Source: Phyllobates terribilis (lineage: Eukaryota). From it: DNA of 64,000 bases. Within the stretch, counting starts at the first letter, position 1, and every line of letters starts with the position of its first letter. Of the stretch, positions 17,808 to 56,620 are shown one piece after another. The position numbers and the translations under genes were made by a program. The notes under the pieces were generated by a model. It did no database searches. It saw only the letters and a list, made by a program, of their open reading frames with translations, and had not been told where the DNA came from. The DNA lies in NCBI RefSeq assembly GCF_046119375.1, contig NW_027362768.1:46190001-46254000 (forward strand), written 5' to 3'.

Positions 17808-18832
17808 TGTGGCACCCCAGGGGTCTGGTCACCACAGTAATAGAGATTACGTCGGAGAGCAAGTGGGAGGTTTCCTGGTCAGGATCCCTTAAACATGCAA
17901 CATCCTCCTGCCCCAGTCCTGGGAGGGGAGAATTCTGCCCTTATAAACTGGATCTGGGGTGGGGTTGAGTGAGTCAGAGAACAGAGAACAGTCAGAGTCA
18001 GAGTTAGAGCAAGGGAAACTAACAGCAAGGAGCTCTGTAGGAGCTAGGAGCTAAAGACGAGGGGCTGGAAGCTGAGCAGAGCTCGCCCTGGCAGAAGACA
18101 ATAGGAACCGGACTCAGGAGTCCGTAGCTGTGAGGACTTATATATCCAGCAGCAGAAACCAGCCGGCAGGGGATTTCCTGTCCTTTGGCCAAAGAAGCCC
18201 GGAGGCTCAGTCACAAGCAAGGGACCAGCACTGCCGTCATGGAGCGGAGGCTAACAGAAGGCCCCAAGTCACCAGCCATACGGGTGAGCACTACACGGTA
18301 CACTCAGGGACGTGGGCTACTTCTACCCGCTTACAGCAAGGTAGCCAGGAAGAGTGCAGACAGACGGGGAGGCCTACAACTCCACCTGGCCAGGGGAACT
18401 CCTGCTTGCTCACAGACTAACCAGGCCTCTTATGCTAGCCAGTACTCCCGGGAGGGTCTACCTAATAATCATCAGTAAAGACCCTGAACTGCACTGCAAA
18501 GACTCTGAGTCATTCCTGCTGCGCTCGTGCACCATCACCCCCATCATCCACACTCACTGCCCTGAGGCTATACTCCTCCCGAGGGGAGTTATCCCATTTT
18601 ATGCTGCGCACACAACACCAGCCTCAGCGGTCTGCCTCGCAGCGGTGGTACACCCTGACCGCAATCCACGGGTGGCGCAGTCGGACAGTTAACCTCAAAA
18701 CCTAAGAAATATTGCCACTGGTTTGACCAGCCTGAGCCACGGGACCGGGTCACCGCCACGGAGACTACAGACCCCAGAGACCCGGCACCGGGTATCCCAC
18801 ACACGTGTACACACGGCTCAGGGAGCGCGTCA
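17808..18832 (+). mobile_element. Solo LTR (gypsy-type, 1025 bp) inside hAT 1
   Basis: TGTGGCACC...GCGTCA flanked by CATG at 17804-17807 and 18833-18836; removing it restores the host 133-bp unit; TATA-like and polyA-like motifs. Confidence 0.8.
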
Positions 18833-19483
18833 CATGCAGTACAGCATATTACAAACATAAGTCCCATTATTGGGGAGTGGGTGTCCCATAGTATTTGCTT
18901 ATGCCTTGCAATCAAAAGCTGCCAAAAATTAGGACGGAGCAACTTGCAATGCCCCTTACAAGAGCCATGCAGTACAGCATATTACAAACATAAGTCCCAT
19001 TATTGGGGAGTGGGTCTCCCATAGTATTTGCTTATGCTTTCCCAGCAAAAGCTGCCAAAAATTAGGACGGAGCAACTTGCAATGCCCCTTACAAGAGCCA
19101 TGCAGTACAGCATATTACAAACATAAGTCCCATTATTGGGGAGTGGGTCTCCCATAGTATTTGCTTATTCTTTCCTAGCAAAAGCTGCCAAAAATTAGGA
19201 CGGAGCAACTTGCAATGCCCCTTACAAGAGCCATGCAGTACAGCATATTACAAACATAAGTCCCATTATTGGGGAGTGGGTCTCCCATAGTATTTGCTTA
19301 TTCTTTCCTAGCAAAAGCTGCCAAAAATTAGGACGGAGCAACTTGCAATGCCCCTTACAAGAGCCATGCAGTACAGCATATTACAAACATAAGTTCCATT
19401 ATTGGCGACTGGGTGTCCCATGATATTTGCTTATGCTTTCCCAGCAAAAGCTGCCAAAAATTAGGACGGAGGAACTTGCAATG
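18833..19483. repeat. 133-bp tandem array, about 5 copies, downstream of the transposase
   Basis: CATGCAGTACAGC unit starts at 18833, 18966, 19099, 19232 and 19365. Confidence 0.95.
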
Positions 19484-19629
19484 CTGGCACCCTGGTGGTA
19501 TAGTGGTGGTGGAGGCTGAGGATAAGGAGAAGAAGATTAAACAGCCGAAACAAGGAAGCGTATACCCATGTGTGGGTGTGAAGCGGTGCATGTGAATACA
19601 CCTCCCGAAATAACACAGTGGATTTGACT

Positions 19630-22600
19630 TTATGTTACTCTGCTGTCATTTGGTGGTGATGAGAAGTCTGGCCCAATCCAGCCCTTGATCATTTTGATAA
19701 GGGTCAGCTTGTCAGCATTGTCAGTTGACAGGCGAGTGCGCTTAGCAGTTATAATTCCCCCAGCGGCACTAAAAACACGCTCCGATAGCACGCTAGTGGA
19801 AGGGCAGGCCAGGACCTCCAAGGCGTACAGAGCGAGTTCATTCCAAGTGTCCAGCTTGGATACCCAATAATTAAAAGGCACAGAGGAATCACGGAGGACG
19901 CTGGTACGATCGGCAAGGTACTCCCTCACCATCTTTTGAAACTTTCCACTCCTTGTGAGAGTACCCCGCGCCTCAGGGCCTGTAAGCTGGGCGGGTGTCA
20001 GAAAACTGTCCCAGAACATTGACAGTGTTCCCCTGCCTCTGCTGGATTGGAGTTGCATCTCTCTCGCCTGTACGCCTTGGTTGGGCAATGAAGTGTGACC
20101 TCTGCCGCTAGTGTGTTCAGATGGGAATTTTTTTAAGAGTTCTGCAGCAAGGGCCTTCTGGTATTGCCCCATTTTTGTAGACCTCTCCACCTCAGGAATA
20201 AGAGAGTGAAAGTTCTCCTTGTAGCGGGGGTCTACAAGTGTCACCAACCAGTAATGACTGTCACCCAACATTTTGACAACACGAGGGTCACGGTTAAGGC
20301 AGCGTAACATAAAGTCAGCCATGCGTGCCAGACTGGTAACGGGCAAGATTTCCGTGTCCTCACCAAGATGACGACTGACCATGCTCTGCTCCTCCTCCTC
20401 CTCCTCTTCCTCCTCCCCCCTGTCCTCAGGCCACCCACGCTGCACCGACGGTTTGACACTTGTACAGGTACTACCGTCTACAACGCATGATAGCAGCTCC
20501 TGTTCTTCCTCCTCCTCCTCCTCCTCCTCCTCTCCCTCATTGTCCCCCAATGCACGTTGGGATGAGATGAGGCTGGGCTGTGTGTAATCGCCCGCTACGG
20601 CTTCTTGATCCTTCTCATCTTACTCTGGCTGCAATGCCTCCTCTTTAATTCTCTGCAGAGAGCGTTGCAAAAGACAGACAAGTGGGATGCTGACACTAAT
20701 GATGGCGTCATCGCCACTCACCATCTTGGTGGCCTCCTCAAAGTTTGTCAGGATTGTACATATGTCAGACATCCAGGTCCACTCCTGAGGTCTTACGTGT
20801 GGAGTCTGACCTGAATATCGACGGCCTTGTTGCAGCTGGTACTCCACAACTGCTCTCTTCTGCTCACAAATCCTTTGCAACATGTGGAGGGTAGAGTTCC
20901 AACGTGTGGGGACATCACACACCAGTCGGTGTGCCGGAAGCTGCAAACGCTGCTGCAACACAGCAAGGGCGGCGGAAGCTGTAGCCGACTTGCGAAAATG
21001 AGCTGACAGGCGGCGTACTTTCACGAGCAGATCTGGCAACTCGGGGTACGATTTAAGAAACCGCTGAACCACGAGGTTAAGCACATGAGCCAGGCATGGT
21101 ACGTGTGTGATCTCACCTCGCCTCAGAGCCGCCACCAGGTTACGGCCATTGTCACACACGACCATGCCGGGATGTAGGTTCAGTGGTCTCAGTCACAGAT
21201 CTGCCTGCTCTTTCACAGCTGTCCACAACTCACAAGCAGTGTGAGGTTTATCACCTAAGCTTATCAGTTTCAGCACAGCATGTTGCCGCTTGGCGGAGGC
21301 AGTACTGCAATGCTTCCAGCTTGTACCTGATGTGGTGATATCTGAGATGGAGGCTGAACATGAGGAGGAGGAGGAGGATGCGCAGGAACTGTACACTGTG
21401 GGGGCAACTCTGACTGACATAGGGCCCGCAATCCTCGGTGTGGGGAGGATGTGTTCCGTCCCAAGGTCCGACTGGGTCCCGGCTTCCACTATGTTTACCC
21501 AGCGTGCCGTCAGAGAGATGTACCGTCCCTGGCCACAAGCACTTGTCCACGTGTCCGTTGTCAGGTGGACTCTCCCAGTAACTGCGTTGTTGAGGGCACG
21601 GCAGATGCTTTGGGACACGTGCTTGTGTAGTGCGGGGATGGTACACCGGGTAAAATAGTGTCGGCTGGGAACCGAGTACCGAGGGACGGCCACCGCTATA
21701 AGATTGCGGAAGGATTCCGTCTCCACCAGCCTAAAAGGCAGCATTTCCAATGCACGCAGTCGTGAAATGTGAGAATTTAGGATTGTGGCCTGTGGGGCGT
21801 TAGCTGCGAATTTCCGCTTTCGTTCAAAGGTCTGGGATATGGACAATTGAACGCTGCGGTGGGACATGGACGTGGACGTTGATGCTGTTTCTTGAGAAAC
21901 TACCATAACAAGTGAAGACTGAGAGGAGGGGGCATCTTTACATGCAGTATGGACAGGGGATTGCCTTGCACACACAACAGGGGGTTCTATTGCACGCACA
22001 ACAGTGGAAGAAGCAGTGGTGACACCCGCTGACACTGGTCGTGGACCCTGGGTTTCGCCCCACAAAGTCGAGTGCTTTGCTACCATGTGCCTGATCATGC
22101 TGGTGGTGGTCAGGCTGGTAGTTTTGTCACCCCTGCAGATGTTGTCATGGCAGGTGGAACATATGGCCTTTTTGGGGTTATCAGCAGAGTCTTTAAAAAA
22201 ATTCCAGACTCTGGAAGACCTACCGCTTGTACTGGCAACGTCCCTCGTGTTGGTGTTACTCGGAACGGTTGCCTGCCTTCTGTCTGCGGCCACCACACTG
22301 CTTCTTCCTGCCTGTTGGGGTACTCTGCCTCCCTCCCCCTGTGTGCTGCTGGCCTCTCTCTGCATGTCCTCCTTCCACGTTGGGTCAGTTACTAGATCAT
22401 CCACCACCTCCTCCTCTTCCACTTGCGCACCACGATCCTCCTCCTCACTTCCTGGCAATTGTGTCTCGTCATCGTCCACCTCTTGTGACAGATTGCCAAC
22501 GTCGACTTCCTGTGGCCGTGGCTGTTCAAATATTTGGGCATCGCAACATGGGATCTCCTCTTCCACCACTTCAAGCGTATCAGGCGAGGGGCCCAAATAT

Positions 22601-23001
22601 GGAAATGGACCAGTGAACAGCTCTTCAGAGTGTCCAAGTGTGGGATCACTTGCTGTCTGACGACACTCGGCATGGTGGGAGGAAGGAGCATCAGGGTGAG
22701 GAGGAGTATGCGGTCGAGACTCACGGCTACTAAGAGTTGACCGTGTGGAAGACAGACCGGAGGTGGTGGTGCCCAGGTAACAGGAAGTATTGTCTGCTAT
22801 CCAATTAATAACCTGTTCACACTGATCAGTTCTCAATGCTGGTGTTGTTCTGTGCTTCCCTAGTAATTCGGTCAAGAAGTGGGAGCGAGAAGATGTGGCT
22901 GTTGGTTGTGGCACATTTTCACCTTGGCCACGGCCCCGTCCTCTGCACGAACCATCACTAGAACGTCCACTTCCACGTCCCTTGCCACGCGCCTTGCCCA
23001 T
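19630..23001 (-). pseudogene. hAT transposase, single exon of about 1123 codons with two in-frame stops
   Basis: ORFs 21193..23001, 20620..21165 and 19630..20550 share one frame: BED finger (VWNFF..CSTC..MIRHMVAKH), TTDTWTS, VCDNGRN, CLAHVLNL, TRWNST, and hATC domain SVLSERVFS. Confidence 0.95.
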
Positions 23002-23064
23002 TGTAAATGAAGTAAAATAGCTTACACTTGCACTATCAATGGAAAAAGGGTAATAAAGTGTAGA

Positions 23065-25220
23065 TTAGAACCGTGGAAGAGGAAAACCACAGTTATTGTT
23101 TACTGGGGTATACCACAATTTTTTAAATAGAGATATTTGCGGCTGAACAGTGAGCGACACACTCAAACTGCTTTTTTTTTAGATACCAAAGGCCCAAAAC
23201 TGGATAGTACAGCGATTTGACCCGTGGAACTGCGAAACCACACTGGGATGTCGGGCCTACGCAAGACTATTTTCAACAGATATATTTTTGTGTCACAACA
23301 GTCAGGAGACACTACTGTTTTTCTTTACGGAAAAAACTACCAAAACCTGAACAATAGAGATTTTTTACCGTGGAACAGCAAAACCACAGTTATACTTTAC
23401 TGGTGTATACTAGGCTTTTTAAAATATATTTATATTTGTGGCTAAACAGTGAGCGACACACTCAACTGTTTTTTTTAGATACAAATGGCCCAAAAGTGGA
23501 AAATACAGAGGTTTGTACCGTGGAACTGCAAAACCACACTTGTATTTCTCGGGCCTACACCAGACTATTTTCAACAGAATATTTGTTTCTGAAAAATCAG
23601 GGAGACACTATTTTTTTTTTTTTTACAGCAAAAAATGCAAAAAGCAGGATAATAGAGATTTTTTACTGTGGAACAGCAAAAGCACACTTCTGTCTCTCTG
23701 GCCTGCACCAGACTATTTTCAACAGATATATTTGTGTCTGAAAAATCAGGGAGACACTATTATTATTTTTATACAGCAAAAAATGGCAAAAACAGGATAA
23801 TAGAGATGTTTTACCGTGGAACATCAAAACCACAGTAATAATTTACTGGTGTATACCAGGCTTTTTAAAATATATATATATTTGCGGCTGAACAGTGAGC
23901 GACACACTCAAACTGTTTTTTTTAGATACAAATGGCCCAAAAGTAGATAATACAGAGGTTTGTACCGTGGAACTGCAAAACCACACTTGTATTTCTCGGG
24001 CCTATACCAGACTATTTTCAACAGATATATTTGTGTCTGAAAAATCAGGGAGACACTATTTTTTTTTTTTTTTTTACAGCAAAAAATTCAAAAAGCAGGA
24101 TAATAGAGATTTTTTACCGTGCAACAGCAAAAGCACACTTCTGTCTCTCTGGCATACACCAGACTATTTTCAACAGATATATTTGTGTCTGAAAAATCAG
24201 GGAGGCATTATTTTTTTTTTTTTTACAGCAAAAAATGCAAAAAGCAGGATAATAGAGATTTTTTACCGTGGAACAGCAAAAGCACACCTCTGTCTCTCTG
24301 GCCTACACCAGACTATTTTCAACAGATATATTTGTGTCTGAAAAATCAGGGAGACACTATTTATTTTTTTTTTTACAGCAAAAAATGCAAAAAGCAGGAT
24401 AATAGAGATTTTTTACCGTGGAACAGCAAAAACACACTTCTGTCTCTCTGGCCTACACCAGACTATTTTCAACAGATATATTTGTGTCTGAAAAATCAGG
24501 GAGACACTATTATTAATTTTATACAGCAAAAAATGCCAAAAACAGAATAATAGAGATGTTTTACCGTGGAACATTAAAACCACAGTAATAATTTACTGGT
24601 GTATACCAGGCTTTTTAAAGTATATATATATTTGCGGCTGAACAGTGAGCGACACACTCAAACTGTTTTTTTTAGATACAAATGGCCCAAAAGTGGATAA
24701 TACAGAGGTTTGTACCATGGAACTGCAAAATCACACTTGTATTTCTCGGGCCTACGCCAGGCTATTTTCAACAGATTTATTTGTGTCTGAAAAATCAGGG
24801 AGACACTATTTTTTTTTTTTTTACAGCAAAAAATGCAAAAAGCAGGATAATAGAGATTTTTTACCGTGGAACAGCAAAAGCACACTTCTGTCTCTCTGTC
24901 CTACACCAGACTATTTTCAACAGATATATTTGTGTCTGAAAAATCAGGGAGACACTATTATTATTTTTATACAGCAAAAAATGGCAAAAACAGGATAATA
25001 GAGATGTTTTACCGTGGAACATCAAAACCACAGTAATAATTTACTGGTGTATACCAGGCTTTTTAAAATATATATATATTTGCGGCTGAACAGTGAGCGA
25101 CACACTCAAACTGTTTTTTTTAGATACAAATGGCCCATAGAACTGCAAAACCACACTTCTATTTCTCTGGCCTAAACCAGACTATTTTCAACAGATATAT
25201 TTGTGTCTGAAAAATCAGAG
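23065..25220. repeat. ~149-bp satellite with three monomer types in higher-order arrangement
   Basis: ACCGTGGAAC anchor recurs about every 148-152 bp; about 15 monomers in order C A C A B C A B B B C A B C A'. Confidence 0.9.
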
Positions 25221-26058
25221 GCACACTTTTTTTTTGGGGGGGGCACCAAAAGGTTAATAAGATGGGTATTTGTACATTGTGAAGGAGGAAAAAAAAAAGA
25301 GGATTTAGATAAAAAAAAAAAGGATTTTTCCTGGCCCCCGGGACCTGGAGCTAAGTCCAGCAATTTCAGCAACAGGAGCAGCACACAGGACTGTAATGCA
25401 GCATTTGCTGGTATAACCACTGCGTCTCCTATACAGCCTGCCTGCCTGCCTGCCTGATATACCTGGGATGGATATTAGTCCTGAGAAGGACTGTTTGTTT
25501 GATCTGGCAGCCTTTACAGACCCTACACTAACTATTTTGCAGGATATATCTCTCCCTAAATCAGCAGTGCTGTCCCTACACTGTCTGATCCGGAGCGACT
25601 GTGTCCAAGATGGCGGCGCCCGGTTTTAAATACTCGAGGTGACGCTGTGCGGCCAGCCAATCACTGTAATGCCCACAAACAACATGGCTGCGGCATTACA
25701 GTGACTGGCTGGCAATCACTGCATGTTCATTGCCTCTGTAAAGAGCGCCAAACATGCAGGGCGGAGACCCGAGCTCCCGCCCGAGTAACCCGGAAATGCT
25801 CGGTGCTCGCCGAACATCCCGAGTAGCGTGATGCTCGGGCGAGTACCGAGCAGTGTCGAGCATGTTCGCTCAACACTAGTCATGATGCATTGTCAGCATG
25901 GATATATATTTAAGTGTGCATTTAAATGCTCAATTAATACCTATTATAACTTATAATTTGATGTATTTTTTGCATTTATCTCTTCATGTGTTGCATTTAA
26001 TGTGTTAGGAGGTTTAAGTTAATGATGTGTGATCATGTGGTTAATCATTTCCTATATA

Positions 26059-40490: not shown

Positions 40491-40776
40491 TAGTCTTGAG
40501 CGCAAGTGCTCACTACTTGACTTTGCATCGGGTACTCAGGTATGCACCATGTATCACGGGTGCTCAAGTGAAATTCTAGAGTCCCCCCCGTATGTTTCAC
40601 GGTTATTAGACACCCCCCCAAAAAAATGAGGGGATCGCTCGTGCATGGCAGCCAATCCGCACGAGGTTTTTTTGGCCGTGAAACATATGGGATGGAGACT
40701 TGAGCACCCGCGATACTCAATACATACCCGAGCACCCGATGCAAACTCAAGTAGCGAGCACTTGCGTTCAACACTA
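40491..40776. mobile_element. hAT MITE (286 bp) sharing TIRs with the large hAT elements
   Basis: TAGTCTTGAGCG...CGTTCAACACTA; 8-bp TSD GTTGTCAT/GTTGCCAT (7/8). Confidence 0.88.
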
Positions 40777-42698: not shown

Positions 42699-43483
42699 CC
42701 GTATTTTGCATATTATAAAATACACCAGATTATAAGATGCACCCCAAAGTTTTTGGAGGAAAATGGGAAAACAATTCTTTTAAGAAAATCCTGGTGTGTT
42801 TTATAATCCACTTTTTCAGTAGATTACCTGAAGGGCGGTGGTGCTGGAGCGCGGTTCCAGTAGGCAAGGTCGCTGCTGCACCAAGCTGGCATAAGCAGAG
42901 GCAGGAGATGCCGTGGGCCCCAGGCTGGTAGGAAGTGGTGTTCAGTGGAAGTAGGAGTGGGGCAATGCTGCTGGCCCCAGGCTGGCAGAAGCAGGTGCTC
43001 AGCAGTGCACTGCCGACATTTTGTGAAAGCCTGGAGATCGCCTCCTCCAAACTTTCCATGATTTTTAATGCAGTAAACTCTGGGAAAATGGCCAGATTTG
43101 ACACATGCTCAATTGAGATCCCGGGAGCCAAGATCTCGGGAGAAGAGATCTTGATGCCGAGATCTCAATCTGAAAATGTGCCTCCTCCGGTGGCTATTTT
43201 CCCAGAGTCCTCCTCATTGAAAAGCATGGAAATTGTGGGGCTTCTGGCTTTCACAAAATGTTGACGGAGCCCCCTACACCCCTGACTACCCCCTTCCACC
43301 AGCCTGGGACCGGCAGCATCGTTCCACTCCTGCCACCGCTGCCACCAGAAGCTTCCAGCAGCAGCGACCCTGGGACCCCCCGCTCCACCACAGACAGTAA
43401 GCTTCAATTCGAATTATAAAATGCACCTTCATTTTTTTCCCAACTTTGGGGGGAAAAAAAGTGCATCTTATCAAAAAATATGG
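42699..43483. mobile_element. Tc2/pogo-like MITE with an internal ~250-bp imperfect hairpin
   Basis: TA-CCGTATTTT...AAAATATGG-TA termini; arms at about 43014-43130 and 43155-43265 are inverted copies. Confidence 0.75.
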
Positions 43484-45290
43484 TATTTAAAAACAAACAA
43501 AAATGTAAAACAAAATAATGGCTTCTCTGCCTGTGATATACAAGCCTAAGTTTTAGGATTCTGCTTTACCAGCAAAATAAGTGCAATGGGAATTGTACTA
43601 CACTTCTGGTTTGCAATTGCAGTGTATGAATATTAAATTTTTTTTTTTATTAAAGTGATAATGTGTTGTTAATATATTAAATCATAGTTAAATGAATATA
43701 GATGCACTCACTATGCAGCAACTGCACTTCTCTATCTCACTAAAATCTTTGGTTTATTGTTCACAGAATGACTACCGTTCCCATTTTCAATGCTCTTTAA
43801 CATTGCTTCAACACTACTAGATTAGTACAAAAAAAAGTCAAATTTGGGCCATTTTCTGTCCTTATGTGAATGTGCATTGTACCCTGACCTCTTATTCCTA
43901 CATTATAAAAGCATAGAATGGCACTGCTTGGTCATTTCCCAGTGCACTATGTAGTGAAAATGTTGGTCTCACATTAAAGCTACAGGTTGGTGTTCATAGG
44001 AGAACCATCAGCGCAGGCACAGGGCTCTTTAATAGACCTCAGGCTGCCATTTCAACCTATCCCAAGGGGCTGATGTGAACTTGTAATGGTGCATCCCCTG
44101 CACTACAAGCTGTAAATGCTGCTGTAAGAGATTCACAGCATCATTTTAGTGCTTAATAGCAGCTCATCTCCACCTTCTATAGTTAAAAGCTGATGATGTT
44201 ACACATCCATTATCTGCCGGGAAAGATGCAAGCTCAGTTTCTAAACTTGCATTAACAAAAAGAACCTGATATATGACATAATAGTATGTCATATGTTGGA
44301 AATAGGATATCATATTGTAGAATAAATATAGGTTTAATATCAAATAGCGTTGCACAGTTAGAGTATCTTTGAGTGCTTTTGACAAAGATTGGACCATTAG
44401 GAAGGAAAGTAAAATTCTGAAAAACAATTAGTAATAACATCAGTGAAAGTGTATAGGATTCTCAAAGAGAAGCCTGCAAGAACATTAACCAGGATAGGGT
44501 TACAGTCATGAAGTAGAATTATATCAGTTTTATACATTTTTCATATACGACCCAAGCTTCCTAACTTTGAATGAAGTTGTGAAATGTGAATTCCCCTAAT
44601 GAACTGAATCTTTCAGATATAAAATTATAATTTAGGTTACAGATAACATCATCTATGGTTGAAATTAAAGGGCTGTTACATTTGTGAGTAACTGCTATTT
44701 TTTAAATTATTAATAGTCATGAGCGAGCACTAAAATGCTCGGGTACTCGTTGCTCGGGTCGAGCACATTGTAAAACTCGGGTGCTCGACCCGAGCAACAA
44801 GCCCAATGTAAGTCTATGGGAAACTCGAGCATTTTTCAGGCGGCTCACCCGGCGGTCTGCAGAGGGCCTAAAAATTGCCCAAATTGATGGGTACAATGCT
44901 CAAATGACATGGGAACAGCATGGGCAAGACTCCTGGAAGTATTTATGACTCCCAGATCACTGCTGTCAACAATTTTGTCAGAGTATTACGCCACTTTTAC
45001 AGACTCACATAAAACATGCAAAAACTAAACCAAAATGGATTTTCCTGGGAAATATGTTAAGGAACATCCTTTCCGGGGTAATAACTTGTATATAAGACAA
45101 AATAAATAACCAAAAACAAAAATACTCCTCCACACCTTTGGCTATGTTCACATGTAGCGTTTTTGATGCATTTTTGCACTTTTGCATTGCTTTCAACCAA
45201 GACAAATGCATTCACCAGGAAATGTCATTTTAACATTTTACAACCTTATCTGGCCATGTGGTGTGTGACACATCATCAGACACATGCATA

Positions 45291-46309
45291 TGTGTCACCC
45301 TGGCCTGGATGCCACAAATATAATAAAGCTGTGTCTGAGAGCAAGGGGGAGGTCCTCTAGTCAACAATCATTAGCATGCAGCACCTCCTGTTCAGACCAG
45401 TAGGGGGAGCAGGCTGCCCCTATAAAAGCTGGAGTTGGGGGCAGGGTTAGGGAGAACGGGACAACCTGTCTCTGGATAGAGAAGTGTTCCAGAGCAGGGA
45501 CAGACAGTTGTGTTGCAGCCTAAGAGGACGTGTGGCAGTAGGAGAGCCACGAGCCAGGGACAAGAGGCGAAGTGCGCCTGTCCTGGCCGACGAAGAGACT
45601 AATCTACCAGACTTTGGTGTCTGAGGCTGTGAGGATTCCACGTCCTACAGCAGATAACCAGTCTGCAGGGGACTGTATGTTCCTTGGCCTAAGAAGCCTG
45701 GAGGCTCCGCCACAGCAGAGGGGACCAGCAAAGCCGTACCAGGCCGGGAGTAGAAAGGGACCCAAGTTGCAAGCCATACGGGCGAGAGGACACGGTGAGC
45801 TCGGGAACGTGGGCTGTTACACTAAAAGGAGGGAAATAGCCAGAAGGAGCACAGAGAGCATGGTAGGCCTACACCCTGACCCTGACCAGGGCCAGCTTCC
45901 CACTTGCTCTCAGACATCCAGGCCCCCTCCTAGCCGGGCCTGTTTCTGGGTCATATTACCTGTTCTAATAAAGACCCTGAACTGTTTAAGAGGCCTCCGT
46001 TTCCTGGCTATCGCGGTCGGAATCATCCCCTCCATCATCCATTATATATTCTGCCCTGGGGCCATACTCCTCCCGTGGGGAGTTGAACTATTCAGTGCTG
46101 CACATTTATATCAGCCCCAGTGGTCTGCACTGCAGCGGCGGTTAACCCTGACCGCAATCCACGGGTGGCGTAGTCAGACATTACCTACAGCACATAGCAG
46201 ACTACCACTGGTCTGACCACCCTGAGCCACGGAACCGGGTCACCACTACGACTCCCAGCATTGCCCTGAAGTCCGGTTCCGAATGCTCCACGGCCCAGGG
46301 GGCGAGTCA
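45291..46309 (+). mobile_element. Solo LTR (1019 bp) related to 17808-18832, inside hAT 2
   Basis: TGTGTCACCC...GAGTCA; flanks CATA/CATG; shares TAAAGACCCTGAACTG and CCCTGACCGCAATCCACGGGTGGCG blocks with the other LTR. Confidence 0.75.
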
Positions 46310-46399
46310 CATGCAGTGCTGAAAAGACATGGGAACAGCATGGGGAAGACCTCAGGAAGCATCTCTGACTCCCAGGTCACTGCCTAAAAGTGTGCCCAT

Positions 46400-47950
46400 C
46401 ATATGTGATCCTTGGCGCATGCCAAGATGCCTCCCACCATGCACCTGTCATTGCAGACTTGCAACAATTACCGTCTTGTCCTTTTCCCTGTGGAGCGTTC
46501 AGTTGTCCCTACCCCATTCCTTGGAATGCAAGCGCAAGTATTCAGCCAGCCAGCCACCCACCCACAGGCTGCAATACTATACTGCCAAATTTTTGACAGC
46601 TGCTTGAACTTGAAATGTGGCCTTTTAGGCTTGTGGAGGCAGAAGCTGTCCACAATCTTATGGCGGCGGCGACCGGGTATCCATACTCGGTCCCCAGCCG
46701 CCACTATTTGTCCCGGTGTCGTCTTTGTCTTCCACAAGCACGAGTCCCACAACATTACCCATGCCCTCCCCAGTGCACTTACTGGGAAGGACCGCCTAGC
46801 CACAAACATGTGGACAGGTGAATGTGGCCAGGGACGGTACTGAGCTAGTCCACAGCTTTTTTTGCTGAGTTGTATTTCACCACAGCCATATTCTTTAGCT
46901 TGGTGAAAGGATTTGGGAAACCAATTCTACCCAGATGTCATTTCTCCCATGAAAACCTATAAAGCTGCTTTCACTTGAAATGTGGCCTTTTAGGCTCATT
47001 GAGGCGTAATATTTTCATAACCTCATGCCGGCGGCGGCCGGGTGTCCATACTCGGTTCCCAGCCGACTCTGTTTCTCCCGGTATTGTCTCCGCCTTCCAC
47101 AAGCACGGGTCCCACAACATTACCCGTGCCCTTCCCAGTGCACTTACTGGGAAGGACCGCCTAACCACAAACACGTGGACAGGTGAATGTGGCCAGTGAC
47201 GGTACGCAGCCAGTCCACAGCTTTTTCTGAAGAGTTGTATTTCACCACAGCCATATTCTTTAGCTTGGTGAAAGGACTGGCATAGAGGGAAACCGTATCT
47301 ACTCTGGGTGTCATTTCTCCCAGGAAGTCCGCTAAAGCAGCTTGTTGCAGAAGCAATGGCAGCCTGACCAACATCAACTCACACTTGTCGGTGGTGCTGT
47401 GACACACAAACATCATTCTTTGCGCATTTAATTTCATGACTACAGAGTTGGTAATGGCCTGATCTGCAATGCGGTTTGAGAAGTAACATGCATAAGCACG
47501 TCCGATACACATATAAAAAACAGCCATAGAGTGTCCTGGAACCTTCCCCCACACTTTTCATAGCCAGGGCTGCTTCTCGGCAGAATTGGACAGACCAACC
47601 AGAAAACCGGAGACTCCTCGGTGGGCCCTGTCTTCTCCTTCAGGAGAGTTCATAATGCCGTGATGAGGCCATGATGATGATAGAGGCCACCATCTGCTGA
47701 GTTTTCTGTTACTTGGAATGCAAGTGCAAGTATGCAGCCAGCCACCCACCCACAGGCTGCAATACTAAACTGTAAGATTTCTGGGCAGCTGCTTGCACTT
47801 GAAATGTGGCCTTTTAGGCTCATGGAGGCGGAAGCTTTTCATAACCTCATGCCTCATGCCTCGTGTCCATACTCCTTCCCCAGCCGTCACTATTTCTCCT
47901 GGAGTTTTCTCCACCTTCTACAAGCAAGGGTCCCTGAACATTACTGCTGG
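46400..47950 (+). pseudogene. Inverted transposase fragments in hAT 2 (about 46400-46845, 46965-47205, 47712-47950)
   Basis: Plus-strand MWPFRLVEAEAVHNLMAAA..YSVPSRHYLSRC and HKHESHNITHAL..MWTGECGQGRY versus transposase MLPFRLVETEAFCNLMAAA..YSVPSRHYISRC and HKHVSQNISHVL..MWTTACGQG. Confidence 0.88.
47206..47650 (-). pseudogene. dnd1: Tandem-RRM gene fragment resembling dead end 1 (DND1/RBM46/47/A1CF family)
   Basis: One frame with one stop (47558-60): GRAYACYFSNRIADQAI...FVCHSTTDKCELMLVRLP...EMTPRVDTVSLYASP...MAVVKYNS..AVDWL. This is colinear with DND1 as recalled from memory (GFAYARY.SRR.A..AI, VCRSTEK.EL, AVVKYDS, V.WLK). Confidence 0.7.
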
Positions 47951-48198
47951 TACTTTTCTTTGGGAATTTGCTTGCCTCCTACCAGCCTTGAATATTTCCA
48001 GTAAACTATGGTATAACACCATGATATTAGCACTGCCCCCAGTAACAGTAGCGAAGCCATCCCCAATTTACTTCTCAGGAATTTTATTTGGTAGACTGAG
48101 TGGCTGCCCAAATACATTAGTTTCTCACAAAGGAGCTGAAGATAGAGTGGCAGTAGGTGCAAGTTTCTCCACCCTGTTAGATATTAAAGGGTGAACAG

Positions 48199-48325
48199 CA
48201 GCACATTGGATCAGTGGTTAGCACTGAAGCATTGCAGCGCTGGGATCCTGGGTTCAAATCCCAGCAAGGACAACATCTGTAAGGATTTTGTATGTTCTCC
48301 CCATATTTATATGGGTTTCCACTCC
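48199..48325 (+). mobile_element. Truncated tRNA-derived SINE (V-SINE-like)
   Basis: A box TGGATCAGTGG (48207-17), B box GGTTCAAATCC (48251-61), then ..TTTGTATGTTCTCCCC..GGGTTTCC V-domain-like core. Confidence 0.82.
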
Positions 48326-48499
48326 AGTAAATAAGCAGCCATAGAGTGTGCGGGAAACTTCCCACACACTTTTCTTAGCCAGGACTGCTTCTCGGCAGGG
48401 TTGGACGGTCCCATCAGAGAATTCTCTGGTGTGCCCTGGTTTCTACATCAGGAGAGTTCATGATAGCTCTAACTTTGCAGCTGCTATGATGCTCTTGAG

Positions 48500-48668
48500 C
48501 GGGTGAGAAAGTTGAGCCCTCAGAATCAAATCTTCTGGTGGGCACAATGTTTTTCAATCTGAAACAGCTTCTCAGTGGGAGTTGTTTTTCACCACAGCCA
48601 TATTCTTTAGCTCGGTGAAAGGACTGGCATAGAGGGAAACCGTATCTACTCCGGCTGTCATTTCTCCG
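48500..48668 (-). pseudogene. Further dnd1-like RRM2 copy; others at about 46846-46945 and 48335-48470
   Basis: Minus strand reads MAVVKNNSH*EAVSD*KTLC, colinear with the recalled AVVKYDSHRAAAMAKKTLC and retaining the helix deleted in the main copy. Confidence 0.62.
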
Positions 48669-49029
48669 TCACCAGGTTCCGCCCATTGTCACACACGACC
48701 TTGCCTGGCTGTATGTTCAGCTTGCCGCTTGGCCAAGGCAGTGCTGCAGAGCTTTCAGCTTGTAACTAATGTGGTCATTTCAGAGACGGAGGAGGAGGAG
48801 GTGCAGGAGCTGAACAATGTGATTACATTGAGGTTATATTGGCGACTCTGTTTTTATAATAAAGAAAGATCCTACTGGTTTTTTTTTTACGTTATTTTTT
48901 AAGGCAAATGCATTCACCGGGAAATGTCATTTTAACATTTTACAACCTTATCTGGCATCCTGTTTCATTGATGATGGAGGGACTCTGAAAGACACATAGA
49001 GCAGGGCCACAGTTACGAGTACGACATTT

Positions 49030-49460
49030 TCCCATTAGAAAGGAGAGAGTCTGCTATACAGTTATAGGGTATGCAGTGAGTCCAATGGCTGACCAAATTT
49101 AGGAAAAACCCCATTAAGAATTTAAATTCACATAGAGCAGGGCCACAGTAACGACAAATTCCCATTAGAAAGGAGAGAGTCTCCCATAGTGTTGGCCTAT
49201 GCAGTAAATGCAAGGGCTGCCAAAAATTTGGAGGCACTTCAATGCCCCTCGGAAGAGACATGGAGGTCTGAGGGCCTCTTCAAAATAATATTCCCATTAT
49301 TAGGAAGTGGGTCTCCCATAGTGTTAGCCTATGCAGTGACTGCAAGGGTTGCCAAAAATTTGGAGGCACTCCAATGCCCCTTGGAAGAGACGTGGAGGAG
49401 GGCCTCATAATAAAATGTTCCCATTAGAAAGGAGCAGGCCTCCTATACTTGTAATGCCCA
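49030..49460. repeat. Degenerate ~132-bp array, counterpart of the 133-bp array of hAT 1
   Basis: CCCATTA...GTCTCCCATAGT...GCTGCCAAAAATT...CAATGCCCC units near 49030, 49162, 49295 and 49420. Confidence 0.8.
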
Positions 49461-49737
49461 TGCACTAAGTGTATGGGCTGACAAATATTTACCCCTGGGG
49501 GGTATACATGAACTGTACTGTATAAAAACTTTTTTTATGGTCATCATAAACACCCTTTAAAAAAATTATGTGGGTGTTGCATCACAGGCCACACTCACCC
49601 TGGTGATATGGTGGTGGAGGATGAGGAGAAGGAGGAGGACAAGAGCAAATAGCCAAAATCAGGAAGCGTATACCCATGTCTGGGTGTGAAAAGGTGCATG
49701 GGAATACAACTCCCAAGAAAAGACACTGGATTGGAGT

Positions 49738-52700
49738 TTATGTAACGCTGCTATCATTCGGTGGTGTTGAGAAGTCTGGCCCAATCCAGCCCTTGTTCAT
49801 TATTATAAGAGTCAGCCTGTCAGCATTTTCAGTTGACTGGCGGATGCGCTTAGCAGTTATAATTCCACCAGCGGTACTAAAAACCCGCTCTGATAAAACT
49901 CTGGTGGCAGGGCAGGTGTAGCATGGGCGTCTCTGCCTCCTGCCAGGCAGAGACGCCGTCCCTCTCACCGCTGCGCTCCCCGCCCGGCGTCCTCCAGCGC
50001 TCTTCTTCCTGCTGCTGCCGGCGCACGCAGCTTCCCGTGCACTCTGCTTAGGGCGCGCGCGCTCCCTCCCTCTTAAAGGAGCCGCACGCACCGTCCTAAG
50101 GAGTCCCCGGCCAATTGCCGGAGGTCCTCCCATATATAAGGCACCTCCTCCAAAATGGAGGTGCCCGAGCAATAGTTGTTGCACAGTGTACTTACCTCTG
50201 CTTTAGCCCTCAGGTCCCGCTGCTCGCCTGACTACTAGTCCTGGCCGCCAGCCTGACTACCTGTCCAGTCTGCCAACCTGACTACTCTCCAGCCCGACAG
50301 TCTGTCTTCCGTTCAGTCCGCCAGTCTGTCTATGTGCTTTGCCCGTCTGCTTACCTGGAGGCTCCTGCTTGCTACCTGCCGTGCCTACCTAAAGACTCCT
50401 GCCTGTCACTTTCCATGACCACCTGCCAGCCTACCTGGAGGCTCCTGCCCATCACTTGCCGTGACCACCTGACAGCCTACCTAGAAGCTCCTGCCTGTCA
50501 CTTGCCGTGACCACCGGTCAGCCTACCTGGAGGCTCCTGCCCGTCCCTTGCCGTGACCACCTTACAGCCTACCTAGAGGCTCCTGCCTGACTCCTGCCAT
50601 GACCACTCGACAGCCTACTTTGAGGCTCCCGCCTGTCGCCTGCCGTGTCTGCCAGTCCATCCACCTGGATCACTCGTCTGCCTGCCTGCTGTGCCCATCT
50701 TCAATACCGGTCAGTTCCTGCCTTCTGTACCATGGGAGTCACTTACAAGGTCGTCCCCAGAGTAGCACCTGGTCCCTCTGCTCGGACCCTCCCTGGTCAC
50801 AGAGTCGATTGAGCCGCCGTACGACCTAGGTTGCTCCGAGTAGATACCTAGTTATGCCCCTCTGGGTCCCTCCTTGCACTGCAGCACAGAGGTTCCACCA
50901 CCCGGATCCGTAACAGCAGGCCAGGACCTACAAGGCATAGAGAGCCAGTTCATTCCACGTATCCAGCTTGGATACCCAATAATTATAAGGCACAGAGGAA
51001 TCATGGAGGACATTGGTACGGTCGGCAAGGTACTCCCTTAGCATCTTCCCAAACTTTGCACTCCTTGTGATAGTACCCCGCGACTCAGGGCCTGTGCGAT
51101 GGGAGTGTCTGAAAAAACTCTCCCAGAACTTTGACAGTGTTCCCCTGCCTCTGCTGGATTGCATTTGTGTCTCTCTCGCCTGTACACCTTGGTTGTCCAA
51201 CGAAGTGTGCCCTCTGCCGCCAGCGTTTTCAGATGGGAATTTTTTTAATAGTTCAGCAACAAGGGCCATTTGGTACAGCCCCATTTTTGTAGACCTGTCC
51301 GCCTCAGGAATAAGAGATATAAAGTTCTCCTTGTAGCATGGGTCTAGAAATGTAACCAACCAGTAATGATTGTCACCCAAAATTTTGAGAACGTGAGGGT
51401 CAAGGGAGAGACAGCGTAACATAAACTCAGCCATGCGTGCAAGACTACTAACAGGTAAGTCTTCCGTGTCCTCACCAAGAGGATGACTGACCATGCTCTC
51501 CTCCTCCTCCTCCTCCTCTCTGTCCTCTGGCCATCCACGCTGAACAGACAGTATGACAGCTGTGCAGGTACTACCGTCTATAGCGCATGAAACTAGCTCC
51601 TGTCCTTCCTCCCCTTCCTCCTCTTCCTCATTGTCACCCAATAAACTTTGGGATGAAATGAGGCTGGGCTGTGTGTAATCACCCTGTATGGTTCTTTTTC
51701 CATCTCATCGTGCTCTGCCTGCAATGCATCCTCTTTGATTGTGAGTATAGAGCGTTTCAGAAGACAGAGAAGCAGGATGGTGATGCTAATTATGGCATCA
51801 TCGCAGCTCACCATCTTGGTGGAGTCCTCAAAGTTTTCAAAGATGGTACATACAGTATGTCTGACATCCATGTCCACTCCTGAGGTCTTATGTGTGTAGT
51901 CTGAACTGAATACCAATGGCCTTGTTGATGCTGGTACTCAACAACTGCCCTCTTCTGCTCACAAATCCTTCCCAACATCTGCAGTGTAGAGTTCCAATGT
52001 GTGGGGACATCACACATAAGTCTGTGAGCCGGAAACTACAAACGCTGCTGAAACACGGCAAGGGCGGCGGAAGCTGTAGCTGACTTTCTAAAATGGGCAC
52101 ACAGACGGCGTACTTAACAAGCAGATCCAGCAGCTCCGGGTAGGATTTTAGAAACCGCTGAACCACACGGTTAAGCACATGGGCCAGGCATGGTACGTGT
52201 GTGAGCTTGCCTCACCTCAGAGCCGCCACCAGATTCCGGCCATTGTCACACACGACCATGCCTGGCTGTAGGTTCAGCTTTGTGAGCCTCAGATCTGCCT
52301 GCTCTATCAGAGCTGTCCACAACTCTTCAGCATTGTGCGATTTGTCACCTAACCATATAAGCTTAAGCACAGTCTGTTGCAGCTTGGCCGAGGCAGTGCT
52401 GCAGTGCTTCCAGCTTGTGACTGATGTGGTCATTTCGGAGATGGAGGCTGAAGAGGAGGAGGAGGCTGAGGAGGATGAGGTGCAGGACCTGTTGACCGTG
52501 GGGGCAACCCTGATTGACCTATGGCACGCAATCCTTGGCGTCGGGAGGACGTGTTCCGTCCCAAGGTCTGACTTGGTCCCAGCTTCCACTATGCTAACCC
52601 AGTGTGCCGTCAGTGAGATGCACCATCCCTGCCCACAAGCAGTTGTCCACATGTCCGTGATTAGGTGGACTTTCCCGGTAGCTGCATTGTTGAGGACATG

Positions 52701-54023
52701 GCTAATGTTTTGGGACACGTGCTTGTGTAATGCGGGGACGGCACACCGGGAGATATAGTGGCGGCTGGGGACCGAGTACCGAGGGATTGCCGCTGCCATC
52801 AGGTTGCAGAATGCTTCGGTCTCCACGAGCCTAAAAGGCAACATTTCGCGCGAAAGCAGTCGTGAAATGTGAGAATTTAGTAGTGTGGCCTGTGGGGCGT
52901 TGGCTGCATATTTGCGCTTGCGTTCCAAGGACTGGGGTATGGACAACTGAACACTGCGCTGGGACAAGGACATGGACGTGCTTCCTGATGCTGCTGCTTG
53001 AGAGTGTGCAATGACAGGTGCAGGGCAGGAGGAATCCTCGCATGCACCATGGACTGGGGATTGGCTAGCATGCACGACAGCGGAAGAAGAAATGGTGCCA
53101 CCTGCAGACACTGTTCCTGGACCCTGGGGTTCGGCCCACAAAGTCGGATGCTTTTCTGTCATGTGCGTGATCATGCTGGTGGTGGTCAGGCTGGTCGTTT
53201 TTGGGGTTATCGGCAGAGTCTTTAAAAAGCAACCAGACTCTGGAAGACCTAACAGTTGTACTGGCAACTTCCTTCATGTTGGTGTTACGGGGAACAGTTG
53301 CCTGCCTTCTGTCTGCGGCCACCACACTGCTTCTTTCTGCCTGTTGGGGTGCTCTGCCTCCCACCCCCTGTGTGCTGCTGTCCTCGCTCTCCATGTTCTC
53401 CTGCCAGGTCGAGTCAGTTACTATATAATCCACCACCTCGTCTTCCACTTCCGCACCCTGGTCCTCCTCCTGACTTTCTGGCAATTGTGTCTCATCATCG
53501 TCCACCTCTTGTGACACTTTCCCACCGTCGCCTTCGTGTGACCGTGGCTGCTTAATTATTTGGGCATCGCTACATGCGATCTCCTCTTGCCCCGCTTCAA
53601 GTGGACCGGACAAGAGGCCCGAATCTATAAATGGAAAAGTGAACAGCTCTTCAGAGAGTCGAAGTGTGGGATCAGTTGTCTCCGGGCACTCGGCATGGTG
53701 GGAGGAAGGAGGATCAGGATAAGGAAAATGTGGTCCAGACTCAAAGCTACTGAGACTTGACCGTGTGGAAGACAGGGTGGTGTTTGTGGTGGCTAAGTGA
53801 CTGGAAGCATTGTCCGCTATCCAACCAACAACCTTTTGACACTGCTCTTGGTTCAATAGTCGTGTGCTGCAATCCCTTAGGGATTGGGACAGGAAGGTCG
53901 GGCGAGAAGATGTGGTTGTTTGTTGTGGCACAATTTCAGCTTGCCCACTGCCTTGTCTCGGCCTCTGCATACACCATCACCGTCATGTCCAGTTCCCCGT
54001 CCCTTGCCACGTGCCTTATCCAT
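49738..54023 (-). pseudogene. hAT 2 transposase, frameshifted, deleted in the BED region, split by a solo LTR
   Basis: ORFs 53065..53970, 52212..53267, 51888..52178, 51808..52017, 50928..51641 and the end of 49738..50184 match the hAT 1 transposase. Confidence 0.93.
49917..50915 (+). mobile_element. Solo LTR (999 bp) of a sister subfamily of the chromovirus at 2297-8998
   Basis: TGTAGC...TAACA; TSD GCAGG (49912-16, 50916-20); same TATATAAGGCACCTCCTCCAAAATGGAGGTGCCCGAGCAA block; its own ~45-bp array at about 50350-50640. Confidence 0.95.
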
Positions 54024-55619
54024 TTTAAATGGAGGACAGTATCTATCACGCTCACTACAAATGACTGAGTTTAGAGCGAACTTATATGTGATCTGTGTAA
54101 CGGAGAAAACAGAGTTTTAAATACCTGTCCTGTAGGTAACTAGTTTGAACAGCAAACCGGTGTCAAAAACTTTGCTGACACAGTGAAAAATAATTGGAAT
54201 GGATGCCAAAAATGGCAGTATTTTCTGAAAATGTATATGTGATCTGTGTGACGGAGAAAACACAGTTTTAACTAGCTGAATTTCTAGCGCTGTAATATGG
54301 GAAGCACATGGCTGTATTCTGCAGTGCCAACAAGCAAATGGCGCACAAAAACGTTGCTCTTTGGATTGCTTTTTAAACAAATAATGAGGATTAAGTTCCA
54401 AAAAAAAGTATTCCTGGCCCCTGAGACCTGGGCCTTTGTATAGAAATATCTAACAGAAGCAGAAGGCAGAATTGGAATGGAGCCTCTTGTGCTATATGCT
54501 CTTCAGTCTGCTATATACACTGCCTGCCTATATACCCTGCCTGCCTGATATCTCTGCAGATGGATTAGTTAGTCCTCAAAAGGACTGTTTGCAAAGATGG
54601 ATATGTGTAATGCATGGTTTTTCTCCCTACACTACCTAATACACAAGCAAATCTCTCCCTGACGCAGCAGCACCTCTCTCTACTCTGCCTGATTCCGGAG
54701 TGACTGTGACGAGCACGGCGGCGCAGGGTCTGATATAGACCTGATGACGCTGTGCGACCATCCCATCACTGTAATGCTACTAAAGAGCGCCAAACATGCA
54801 GGGAGGGGACCCGAGCTCCCGCCGAGCAACCCCGGAAATACTCGGTGGGAGCCGAGCATCTCGAGCAGTGAGATGCTCTGGCGAGCACCGAGCAGTAGCG
54901 AGCAAGCTCGCTCATCACTAATTATTAACAATTTGCCGATTAAAAACTGTGGATTATGGAGGGATACAGGCCAATAAAGAAAAGTGCTATTTGAGCAATT
55001 CAATATGCTTAGGTAGATAATATGAAAGTGGTCGGGAGTGAAATACCAGCGTAAAATAGTTTTTACAGCTGATCTTATTGTGATCTACATTTGAGCAATT
55101 TTTTATTAGCCAGAAAGTCTGGGTCAACTTTTTTTAAAGATAAAAAAATTAATTCACTTTGCCATAGGCATATACAATGTGATTTATTAAATAAATGTAA
55201 TTGTGCAGTAACAATATATATCAATTTCAGGCCTATTCTCCGTTTGATAAAAATATAAAATATAGAATTGTTGAAAGGGAGAGTTTACCTCTCTCTACGC
55301 CCACTAGAAAGTGCTTCATCTACAAGTATTTGTAGAATTTCACCTTATGGAGGTCAACTTGGGATGCACTTCACATTTCATATATTTAAATAGTTGTGAA
55401 CTGCACGCAGTGCTAGTCAGAGTTACATATAAATAAGATCACTTTTGAGGTGTCTTTCTTTAAGCTAAAAAAGCCCCCTTTTTCCAATCTCTCATTACAC
55501 TGTTCAACAAGGTTTTTGTTTCCTGCATGAAATTGGGTGAATCTTATCGGAATTGTCATGCTGAGTTCATAAATAACTTCAGAATTGCTCTATGATGTAA
55601 GATTTATGAGAAAAATGCA

Positions 55620-56620
55620 ATTATATGTATGCATTGAATACTGTCAAATTCGTATTGGCATGTGATATTCCGAATGCAAAGTCAGCAACAGCGATCACGT
55701 TTAGAAATGTTTTACCATTGATTTTAGTTTATAATCAATGTCCGATGATTCACGGAAAATATTCCCACAATAGTCACTCAGCAGCGAGGGACTCCACCTC
55801 CCCTGGTACTGTTTTTCCATCTGGGAAATGTCTTGATGAAACCTTTCACGATGTTCATCACTTACAGCAGGGTTCCCCAACTCCAGTCCTCAAGGCCCAC
55901 CAACAGGTCATGTTTTCAGGATTTCCTTAGTATTGCACAGGTGATGTAATTATTGCCTGTGCAGGTGATGTAATTATCACCTGTGCAATACTAAGGAAAT
56001 CCTGAAAACATGACCTGTTGGTGGGCCTTGAGGACTGGAGTTGGGGAACCCTGACTTACAGCGCCGAGGTTTGGTGGGAAAAAGTCAATGTGTGAATGAA
56101 GGAAATGTATTTTAAGTGACATGTTACACTTCATTGACTTGACTGAAGAAGACTTTCAACCTGTTCTTTGATAGGTATCGAAGGTAGACATTGCCAATGT
56201 GTAGCAAGACAGCCTTCAAACTTAAGACCGATGAATCAATGAACAGTCGCCATTCCCTTGGGTCATGGTCAACTCCAAGGAAAGAAAACAATCCAAATCC
56301 AGTAATATCACTGCAAAAAGTGAGACTGTCAGCTTAACTGAAATATTTGGTCAAATCTTAATGACGACTGTGAAATACTGAAATTTTTGTACCTGGCTAC
56401 AACAGATTCCACCCTTGCAACCTTGATCCAAGAAGTTCTGCCTGACTCTTTGGTAAACCCATATCTCTGACCAGATCGTTGAGTCTTGCTTGAGATCTTA
56501 AACGTGGAGCAGTTGATATTGAGACCTCTATAGAAGCAATGGATAGCTTTATATCAGACACCTCCCTGGAATCTGTGGATAATAATCCTGTGTCAACATT
56601 CATTAAATCTGCAGCCTTAT
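55620..56620 (-). pseudogene. Transposase remnant, Chapaev3/CMC-like (family assignment tentative)
   Basis: Minus strand LNDLVRDMGLPKSQAELLGSRLQGWNLL, EWRLFIDSS.LSLKAVLLH, CNMSLKIHFLHSHIDFFPPNLGAVSDEHRERFHQDI; central domain deleted. Confidence 0.65.
55868..56053. mobile_element. hAT (Charlie-like) MITE, 186 bp, perfect foldback
   Basis: 78-bp identical inverted arms (55868-55945, 55976-56053); perfect TSD ACTTACAG (55860-67, 56054-61). Confidence 0.96.

Follow-up and report, generated by a model that had tools for sequence, protein, structure and literature searches.

The stretch of the Phyllobates terribilis genome analysed here (64,000 nucleotides of contig NW_027362768.1, positions 46,190,001 to 46,254,000, referred to below as the window) contains a DNA transposon of the hAT family, hAT 2, that harbors pieces of a host germline gene. 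Sequence comparison identifies the minus strand of 46854-48667, located between the stop of the transposase gene and the left terminal inverted repeat (TIR) of the element, as holding true fragments of dead end (dnd1). These fragments are probably the debris of a passenger pseudogene, made from a dnd1 cDNA, that was spread by a dendrobatid hAT family, was scrambled along the way and now shows no sign of function.

The initial annotation of this DNA, made from its letters only, had already proposed the relationship to dnd1, and phmmer, tblastn (E 2e-29) and a phylogenetic tree all agree on it, favoring DND1 over RBM46/47, A1CF and SYNCRIP. The phmmer query was a stop-free piece of 116 residues (47206-47554). 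Among the four PDB matches that it obtained at E ≤ 10, the only significant one is human DND1 (7q4l; E 7e-5, residues 90-183), and a search against 1.8 billion representative proteins returned 13 matches, those looked up being dnd1 or dnd1-like. The top matches are two predictions from P. terribilis, both named "dead end protein homolog 1-like" (P0001, E 3e-22 and 65% identity; P0002, E 2e-19), and below this pair come the Dnd1 proteins of other frogs. By a word-index search with P0001, full-length dendrobatid proteins were reached in P. terribilis (P0017), Dendrobates tinctorius (P0018) and Anomaloglossus (P0019). The maximum-likelihood tree, built on 94 aligned columns, groups the fragment at 47219-47503 (piece A), on a long terminal branch of 0.4, with the Dnd1 proteins of P. 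terribilis and D. tinctorius (support 100/97), and this clade is sister to Anomaloglossus (97/94). Because piece A falls within the Dendrobatidae dnd1 clade, the source of the fragment is taken to be dendrobatid. Translation also recovers the motifs on which the annotation had relied, namely GRAYACYFSNRIADQAI, VCHSTTDKCEL, AVVKYNS..AVDWL and AVVKNNSH*EAVSD*KTLC (asterisks are stops). The Pfam search gave neither an RNA recognition motif (RRM) match nor a DND1_DSRM match in the fragments, which are too short or too decayed.

The pieces were mapped by tblastn against the window, and their residues are numbered on the P. terribilis Dnd1 protein P0017, which has 350 residues and carries RRM and DND1_DSRM. 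All of the dnd1 pieces are on the minus strand, so that the map is given here in the direction of that strand, from high to low coordinates; U designates a composite unit of tail, stretch x and the start of piece B, and SINE stands for short interspersed element.

48666-48813, minus strand: partial duplicate of the transposase gene, a copy of 52469-52377 plus 52280-52223, which adjoins piece A', out of frame and with stops.
48542-48667, minus strand: dnd1 piece A', residues 164-205 (RRM2), with two stops (tblastn 76% identity, E 3e-13).
48395-48541, minus strand: probable dnd1 C-terminal tail (from about residue 314) plus stretch x, recognized when its DNA is aligned to the other three U units and weakly matched in protein.
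48326-48394, minus strand: dnd1 piece B2, residues 195-217, spanning the exon 3/4 junction with no intron (tblastn E 1.5e-5, query P0001).
48196-48325, plus strand: SINE-like insert or filler that replaces dnd1 residues ~218-242 and interrupts the tblastn alignment; single copy in the window.
47944-48195, minus strand: dnd1 piece C, residues 243-323 (linker and double-stranded RNA-binding domain, dsRBD), disrupted by indels and, near 48141, by a frameshift (tblastn E 9e-9 and 4e-9).
47709-47944, plus strand: inverted transposase piece T3, a copy of 52929-52703.
47673-47714, minus strand: probable dnd1 tail, residues ~320-334, reading K*QKTQQMVASIII against KYQQAKEMVASIII; a short, weak match, common to the second element hAT 1 (17283-17321).
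47580-47672, minus strand: stretch x, ~90 nucleotides between tail and piece B, kept in all four U units.
47508-47579, minus strand: dnd1 piece B1, residues 195-218, spanning the exon 3/4 junction with no intron (tblastn 71% identity, E 6e-5).
47219-47503, minus strand: dnd1 piece A, residues 105-197 (RNP1 of RRM1, linker and RRM2), stop-free (tblastn 66% identity over 95 residues, E 2e-29).
46963-47205, plus strand: inverted transposase piece T2, a copy of 52859-52622.
46854-46955, minus strand: dnd1 piece A'', residues ~160-197, part of a 365-bp tandem duplicate of piece A and the transposase piece.
46409-46838, plus strand: inverted transposase piece T1, a copy of 53053-52622.

Together the pieces represent Dnd1 residues ~105-334, that is, the end of RRM1, RRM2, the dsRBD and the C-terminal tail, and neither the N-terminus nor most of RRM1 is found among them. 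Their order is scrambled: residues 164-205 are followed by a tail, by residues 195-323, by an inverted transposase piece, by a second tail, by residues 195-218 and then 105-197, by another inverted piece, by residues ~160-197 and by a last inverted piece. Some of these parts are related to each other or to dnd1 transcripts also at the DNA level. Piece A' is 95.5% identical to 47232-47320, and piece A'', for which tblastn covers 46919→46854 (residues 176-197), shows DNA similarity that runs to ~46970. Piece C matches a hyloid dnd1 mRNA contig (L002) at 80% and piece B1 matches it at 77%, the protein identity of the B copies being 71-74%. From 48394 to 47944, piece B is continued by piece C as in a cDNA (a single tblastn segment covers 48394-48098 with E 4e-9), except that the SINE-like insert breaks the run. 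This insert may be a SINE; ARAGORN found no tRNA in 48196-48325 and Rfam gave no match for it. Stretch x has no dnd1 or untranslated region (UTR) match, either by tblastn with Dnd1 proteins or in the dnd1 mRNA contig.

In the initial annotation, the minus-strand frame 47206-47749 was described as having a single stop and as encoding a two-RRM-like peptide unrelated to the transposase. Exactly one stop is indeed seen on translation, and 47219-47503 is dnd1, but what it encodes (residues 105-197) is no pair of RRMs: it comprises the last part of RRM1 and continues through the linker into RRM2, most of which is included. At 47709-47749 the frame runs antisense to a transposase piece that is inverted. 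Upstream, 47561-47749 does not read as dnd1 in the frame proposed; in another frame, 47508-47579 encodes residues 195-218 and 47673-47714 is probably the tail. A reading of 47580-47660 as the region preceding RRM1 ('GGPPPGW...EVFIGK') was also tried and rejected, as it gave no tblastn match at E ≤ 10 with five proteins and reads better in the other frame. The partial copies that had been announced were located at 46854-46955, 48326-48394 and 48542-48667, although the one placed at 48335-48470 is no N-terminal piece, since it corresponds to residues 195-217. The dsRBD piece at 47944-48195 (residues 243-323, E 9e-9) had gone unnoticed. The repeated A, B and tail pieces bear out the view that the cargo was multiplied within the element.

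The three plus-strand copies (46409-46838, 46963-47205 and 47709-47944), situated in the 3' part of hAT 2, are inverted relative to the gene segment 52622-53053 on the minus strand, to which they are 72-74% complementary. To judge from their arrangement, they could once have paired as hairpins with the transposase transcript.

The carrier is a hAT element bounded by a target site duplication (TSD), as had been proposed, and it retains a transposase gene.

44714-54920, 10,207 bp, transposase on the minus strand: hAT 2, its ends being defined by alignment with the copy at 15267-25878.
49738-54030, minus strand: decayed ZBED4/6-like hAT transposase gene, read from its open reading frames (ORFs), with frameshifts and broken by a solo long terminal repeat (LTR) at 49917-50915.

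A perfect 8-bp TSD, ATTATTAA, is found at 44706-44713 and 54921-54928, and the 15-bp TIRs within it (TAGTCATGAGCGAGC and, as reverse complement, TAGTGATGAGCGAGC) match at 14 of 15 positions. The second copy, hAT 1 (15267-25878), has the same TIR ends as hAT 2, and its flanks are degenerate, matching at 5 of 8 positions. A PF05699 (hAT dimerisation) match that passes the cut-off occurs at 49738-50184 (E 5.7e-5). Relatives of the transposase, among 16 matches, are annotated as ZBED4/6-like and carry PF02892, PF27039 and PF05699 (BED and hAT-dimer), and the best of them is a P. terribilis protein with 89% identity. The transposase ORFs of hAT 1 comprise 602, 181 and 306 residues, and the two elements are 80.6% identical across the 3.2-kb transposase region. 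Frameshifts, together with the solo LTR inside the transposase gene, mean that hAT 2 is dead. An Rfam search of hAT 2 gave no match. The solo-LTR-like insert (49917-50915) resembles, with ~72% identity, both LTRs (2297-2904 and 7724-8335) of an LTR element located upstream, and it contains a 46-bp tandem array at 50337-50704.

Part of the dnd1 cargo is shared by the two elements. The U unit, which consists of the tail, stretch x and the start of piece B, occurs together with its junction to an inverted transposase piece twice in hAT 2 and twice in hAT 1, where its copies are the following.

16301-16470, minus strand: U unit copy a of hAT 1, 71% identical in DNA to 47537-47905.
17148-17341, minus strand: U unit copy b of hAT 1, 75% identical in DNA to 47540-47737 and reaching a few codons beyond the exon junction.

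Across hAT 1 and hAT 2, the DNA identity of the U units is 71-78%. As the unit and its transposase junction are present in both diverged elements, they are therefore older than the split between hAT 1 and hAT 2. The presence of the cargo in hAT 1, which had been expected if it was a genuine passenger of the family, thus applies to the U unit, but hAT 1 has neither piece A nor piece C; it has lost them, or hAT 2 gained them later. The sharing of this unit also bears on the idea that an ordinary dnd1 pseudogene or retrocopy lay at this locus and was broken up by later transposon insertions, so that the hAT ends are coincidental: although DND1 retrocopies are reported as common in amphibians in the searched text of a preprint (bioRxiv 10.64898/2026.06.26.734816), this is barely credible for pieces that lie inside TIR- and TSD-bounded limits, that are interleaved with the transposase sequence of the element itself and that recur, as a U unit with an identical inverted-transposase junction, in a second element elsewhere.

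From its sequence, the cargo looks like a product of spliced dnd1 cDNA, because in piece B exon 3 is joined directly to exon 4. The translation of piece B, ...REAALAMKSVGEG SRTLYGC..., compares with ...REAALAKKSLCEG/TRTLYGC... in Dnd1, the slash marking the exon 3/4 junction (...KKSLCEG/TRTLYGC...). Genomic DNA of a snake (contig L001) shows a GT intron that interrupts the G codon of ...VEG, where the exon ends, and in a Gastrophryne gene model an unrelated sequence sits exactly after LCEG. The junction is intron-less in three copies, which are both B copies of hAT 2 and, over a few codons, one copy of hAT 1. Pieces A and A' fall wholly inside exon 3 and hold no information on introns. The comparison with dnd1 intron positions, which had been suggested as a way of distinguishing DNA capture from a retrocopy, thus points to spliced cDNA, but for one junction and with the intron read outside dendrobatids. 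Among amphibian genes, DND1 is, with PIWIL2, one of the top retrocopy parents according to the searched text of the same preprint (bioRxiv 10.64898/2026.06.26.734816).

It was originally argued that the cargo had been acquired by Pack-type transduplication, in which the hAT would have taken up genomic dnd1 DNA, exons and flanks included, like the Pack-MULE/Pack-TYPE elements of plants. Such an origin would account for gene fragments that are enclosed by the TIRs of a DNA transposon and have been multiplied there, and it is compatible with the silence of A and A' on introns, as well as with the fact that neither poly(A) nor 3'UTR was found. It is nevertheless unlikely, given that piece B crosses from exon 3 to exon 4 with no intron in three copies, that residues 195-323 run from B to C as one cDNA-like stretch and that the carrier still has its transposase gene at 49738-54030. 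Since Pack elements are non-autonomous and hAT 2 has retained a decayed transposase gene, it is not a Pack-type element.

The cargo is decayed, as had been suspected, with stops, frameshifts and an equal loss of residues at conserved and variable columns. Constraint was assessed, instead of by the ratio of nonsynonymous to synonymous substitution rates, by comparing the columns that are at least 90% conserved among 23 amphibian Dnd1 orthologues with the variable ones. Relative to both dendrobatid orthologues, piece A is changed at 10 of 36 conserved and 17 of 58 variable columns (Fisher p = 1), while functional orthologues have 0-1 conserved columns changed and 19-20 variable ones. The residues lost in piece A include RNP1, where GFAYARY has become GRAYACY. 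As conserved and variable columns are equally changed, and as there are also stops, frameshifts, an insert and a missing half of the protein, the decay is regarded as neutral. Nowhere in hAT 2 are intact tandem RRMs and a DND1 dsRBD found in one frame, and the hAT 2 pieces cannot give rise to a Dnd1-like protein. The two P. terribilis dnd1-like predictions, P0001 and P0002, which are located on two chromosomes, show relaxed constraint (5/3 and 5/10 changes at conserved/variable columns); they may be gene models derived from pseudogenes, possibly transposon-borne like the scraps in hAT 2. P0002 is without part of RNP1.

An alternative that would give the cargo a past function is that an active ancestor encoded either an in-frame fusion of the transposase N-terminus to the RRM2-dsRBD part of Dnd1, or a separate Dnd1-like module, serving in germ-plasm targeting or in regulation, and that hAT 2 holds its wreck. 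The transposase duplicate does adjoin dnd1 residue 164 in the same orientation, and piece A is stop-free over 116 codons. In hAT 2, however, the transposase and dnd1 parts that meet at 48666 are not in one frame and stops occur there, the element lacks RRM1 and the N-terminus, and conserved Dnd1 residues have been lost as often as variable ones; moreover, no transposase-Dnd1 fusion protein was found among the 16 relatives of the 602-residue transposase ORF in public annotations. The proposal is thus very unlikely.

It has also been suggested that the pieces could be a source of small RNAs (piwi-interacting RNAs, piRNAs, or small interfering RNAs, siRNAs) that regulate the host dnd1. This would suit a germline-gene sequence placed inside a repeated element, in whose array the inverted transposase pieces could pair with the transposase transcript. 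These inverted arms are only 72-74% complementary, though, and no dnd1 hairpin exists in hAT 2, because all of its dnd1 pieces have one orientation. The pieces are ~66% identical to dendrobatid Dnd1 in protein and 67-80% identical to hyloid dnd1 mRNA in DNA, so that long exact matches are unlikely. Owing to the single orientation and the low identity to dnd1, a small-RNA role of the hAT 2 copy would be highly improbable.

Several points weigh against the interpretation of the pieces as decayed dnd1 cDNA carried by a hAT family. A single exon junction is testable, on a short piece of 24 residues, and the position of its intron is predicted from the snake contig and one frog gene model, not from a dendrobatid gene. 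No poly(A) tract, no match to the 3'UTR of the mRNA contig (L002) and no target duplication of the type made by long interspersed elements (LINEs) were found; the tail passes straight into stretch x and then into piece B, with no A-run beside the dnd1 pieces. These hallmarks of a retrocopy, poly(A) and LINE-type duplications, may have been lost through rearrangements. The absence from hAT 1 of pieces A and C, which are the larger ones, means that a separate later acquisition could be conceived. Finally, piece A has kept its stop-free stretch of 116 codons.

The proposed history of the passenger pseudogene begins with the spliced dnd1 cDNA of a dendrobatid frog, part of which would have joined an ancestral ZBED4/6-like hAT between the transposase stop and the TIR. 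This capture might have occurred when a double-strand break was filled with reverse-transcribed germline mRNA or, by another route, when a retrocopy landed inside a hAT element. The cargo would then have moved around the genome together with the hAT. Within the element, it would have been cut, duplicated and interleaved with transposase-gene pieces of the same element, some direct and some inverted, a scrambling that was likely caused by template switching or microhomology-mediated joining during the repair of excision gaps. The patchwork of direct and inverted pieces and the backward jumps along the cDNA fit template switching or microhomology-mediated end joining. Two junctions were read closely for microhomology: AGC(T/A)GCTT is present at the junction of the tandem duplication (46963-46970), and an imperfect CCAG..TCCG at 48666, where the transposase duplicate meets dnd1 residue 164.

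Other repeats are present in and around the two elements. A block of ~650 bp (45606-46250 and 18107-18760, 70% identical) occurs in both hATs at a position that differs with respect to the dnd1/transposase array; its ORF of 214 residues has no Pfam match, and the block may be an independent small element. A left-subterminal motif of 56 bp is found at 45199-45254 and 48901-48956 in hAT 2 and at 15745-15800. The second hAT 2 copy is 96% identical, and this value, far above the identity between hAT 1 and hAT 2, suggests a recent internal duplication or gene conversion. Beyond the transposase stop, both hATs contain tandem repeats of ~130-136 bp (48993-49490, 17577-17807 and 18859-19466). In the inverted transposase piece of hAT 1 (16100-16300 and 17000-17130) there are short tandem reiterations of 'GGTCCCCAGCCGCC', which codes for YSVPSR. 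Palindromic stretches are located at 55868-56053, 40491-40776 and 42953-43331, the first of them being 92.6% self-complementary across 186 bp and lying just beyond the right end of hAT 2.

If a hAT family did spread these scraps, a single cDNA capture followed by transposon amplification, instead of many retropositions, would explain the excess of DND1 retrocopies in amphibians, and, for giant amphibian genomes, the numbers of retrocopies and the feedback claimed to link germline genes with retrotransposons would both need rereading. Were an ancestral fusion or module to have existed, a transposon would have had a germ-plasm or germ-cell RNA-binding function, and the amphibian dnd1 'retrocopies' would be relics of its spread. 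For annotation, the P. terribilis "dead end homolog 1-like" genes may turn out to be pseudogenes of this hAT-borne kind.

Parts of this structure have counterparts in known systems. Rearranged hAT derivatives of the Ac/Ds type contain filler DNA and have a patchwork interior with microhomology at the junctions, as in hAT 2, and the Mu killer type has an inverted duplication of part of the transposase in or near the element, which hAT 2 also displays. In contrast to both, the filler of hAT 2 includes a host germline cDNA, and its inverted arms are 72-74% complementary. With vertebrate DND1 (7q4l; P. terribilis XP_073525108.1), the pieces are homologous over the end of RRM1, RRM2, the dsRBD and the tail, dendrobatid Dnd1 being the closest; unlike it, hAT 2 has no intact frame, no N-terminus and no more than the end of RRM1, its pieces are scrambled and conserved residues are lost. 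The processed pseudogenes of amphibian DND1 (bioRxiv 10.64898/2026.06.26.734816) are likewise intron-less dnd1-derived sequences in an amphibian genome. The preprint credits retrotransposition for them and, in the text searched, does not mention DNA transposons; the hAT 2 copies differ from these retrocopies in that they lie inside hATs, are devoid of poly(A) and LINE hallmarks and were apparently multiplied by the hAT. That DNA transposons can carry fragments of host genes is well known from plants and fungi, and a full-text literature search gave no report of such carriage by a vertebrate hAT, or of dnd1. The Pack-MULE/Pack-TYPE elements of plants and a housekeeping gene amplified by a hAT in fungi are alike in holding gene fragments between TIRs, which are also copied along, often rearranged and mostly non-coding debris (PMC8903248, PMC6710886). 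What distinguishes hAT 2 from the systems covered there is that it is a vertebrate hAT with a transposase gene, that its cargo is intron-less and that inverted pieces of its own transposase are interleaved with this cargo.

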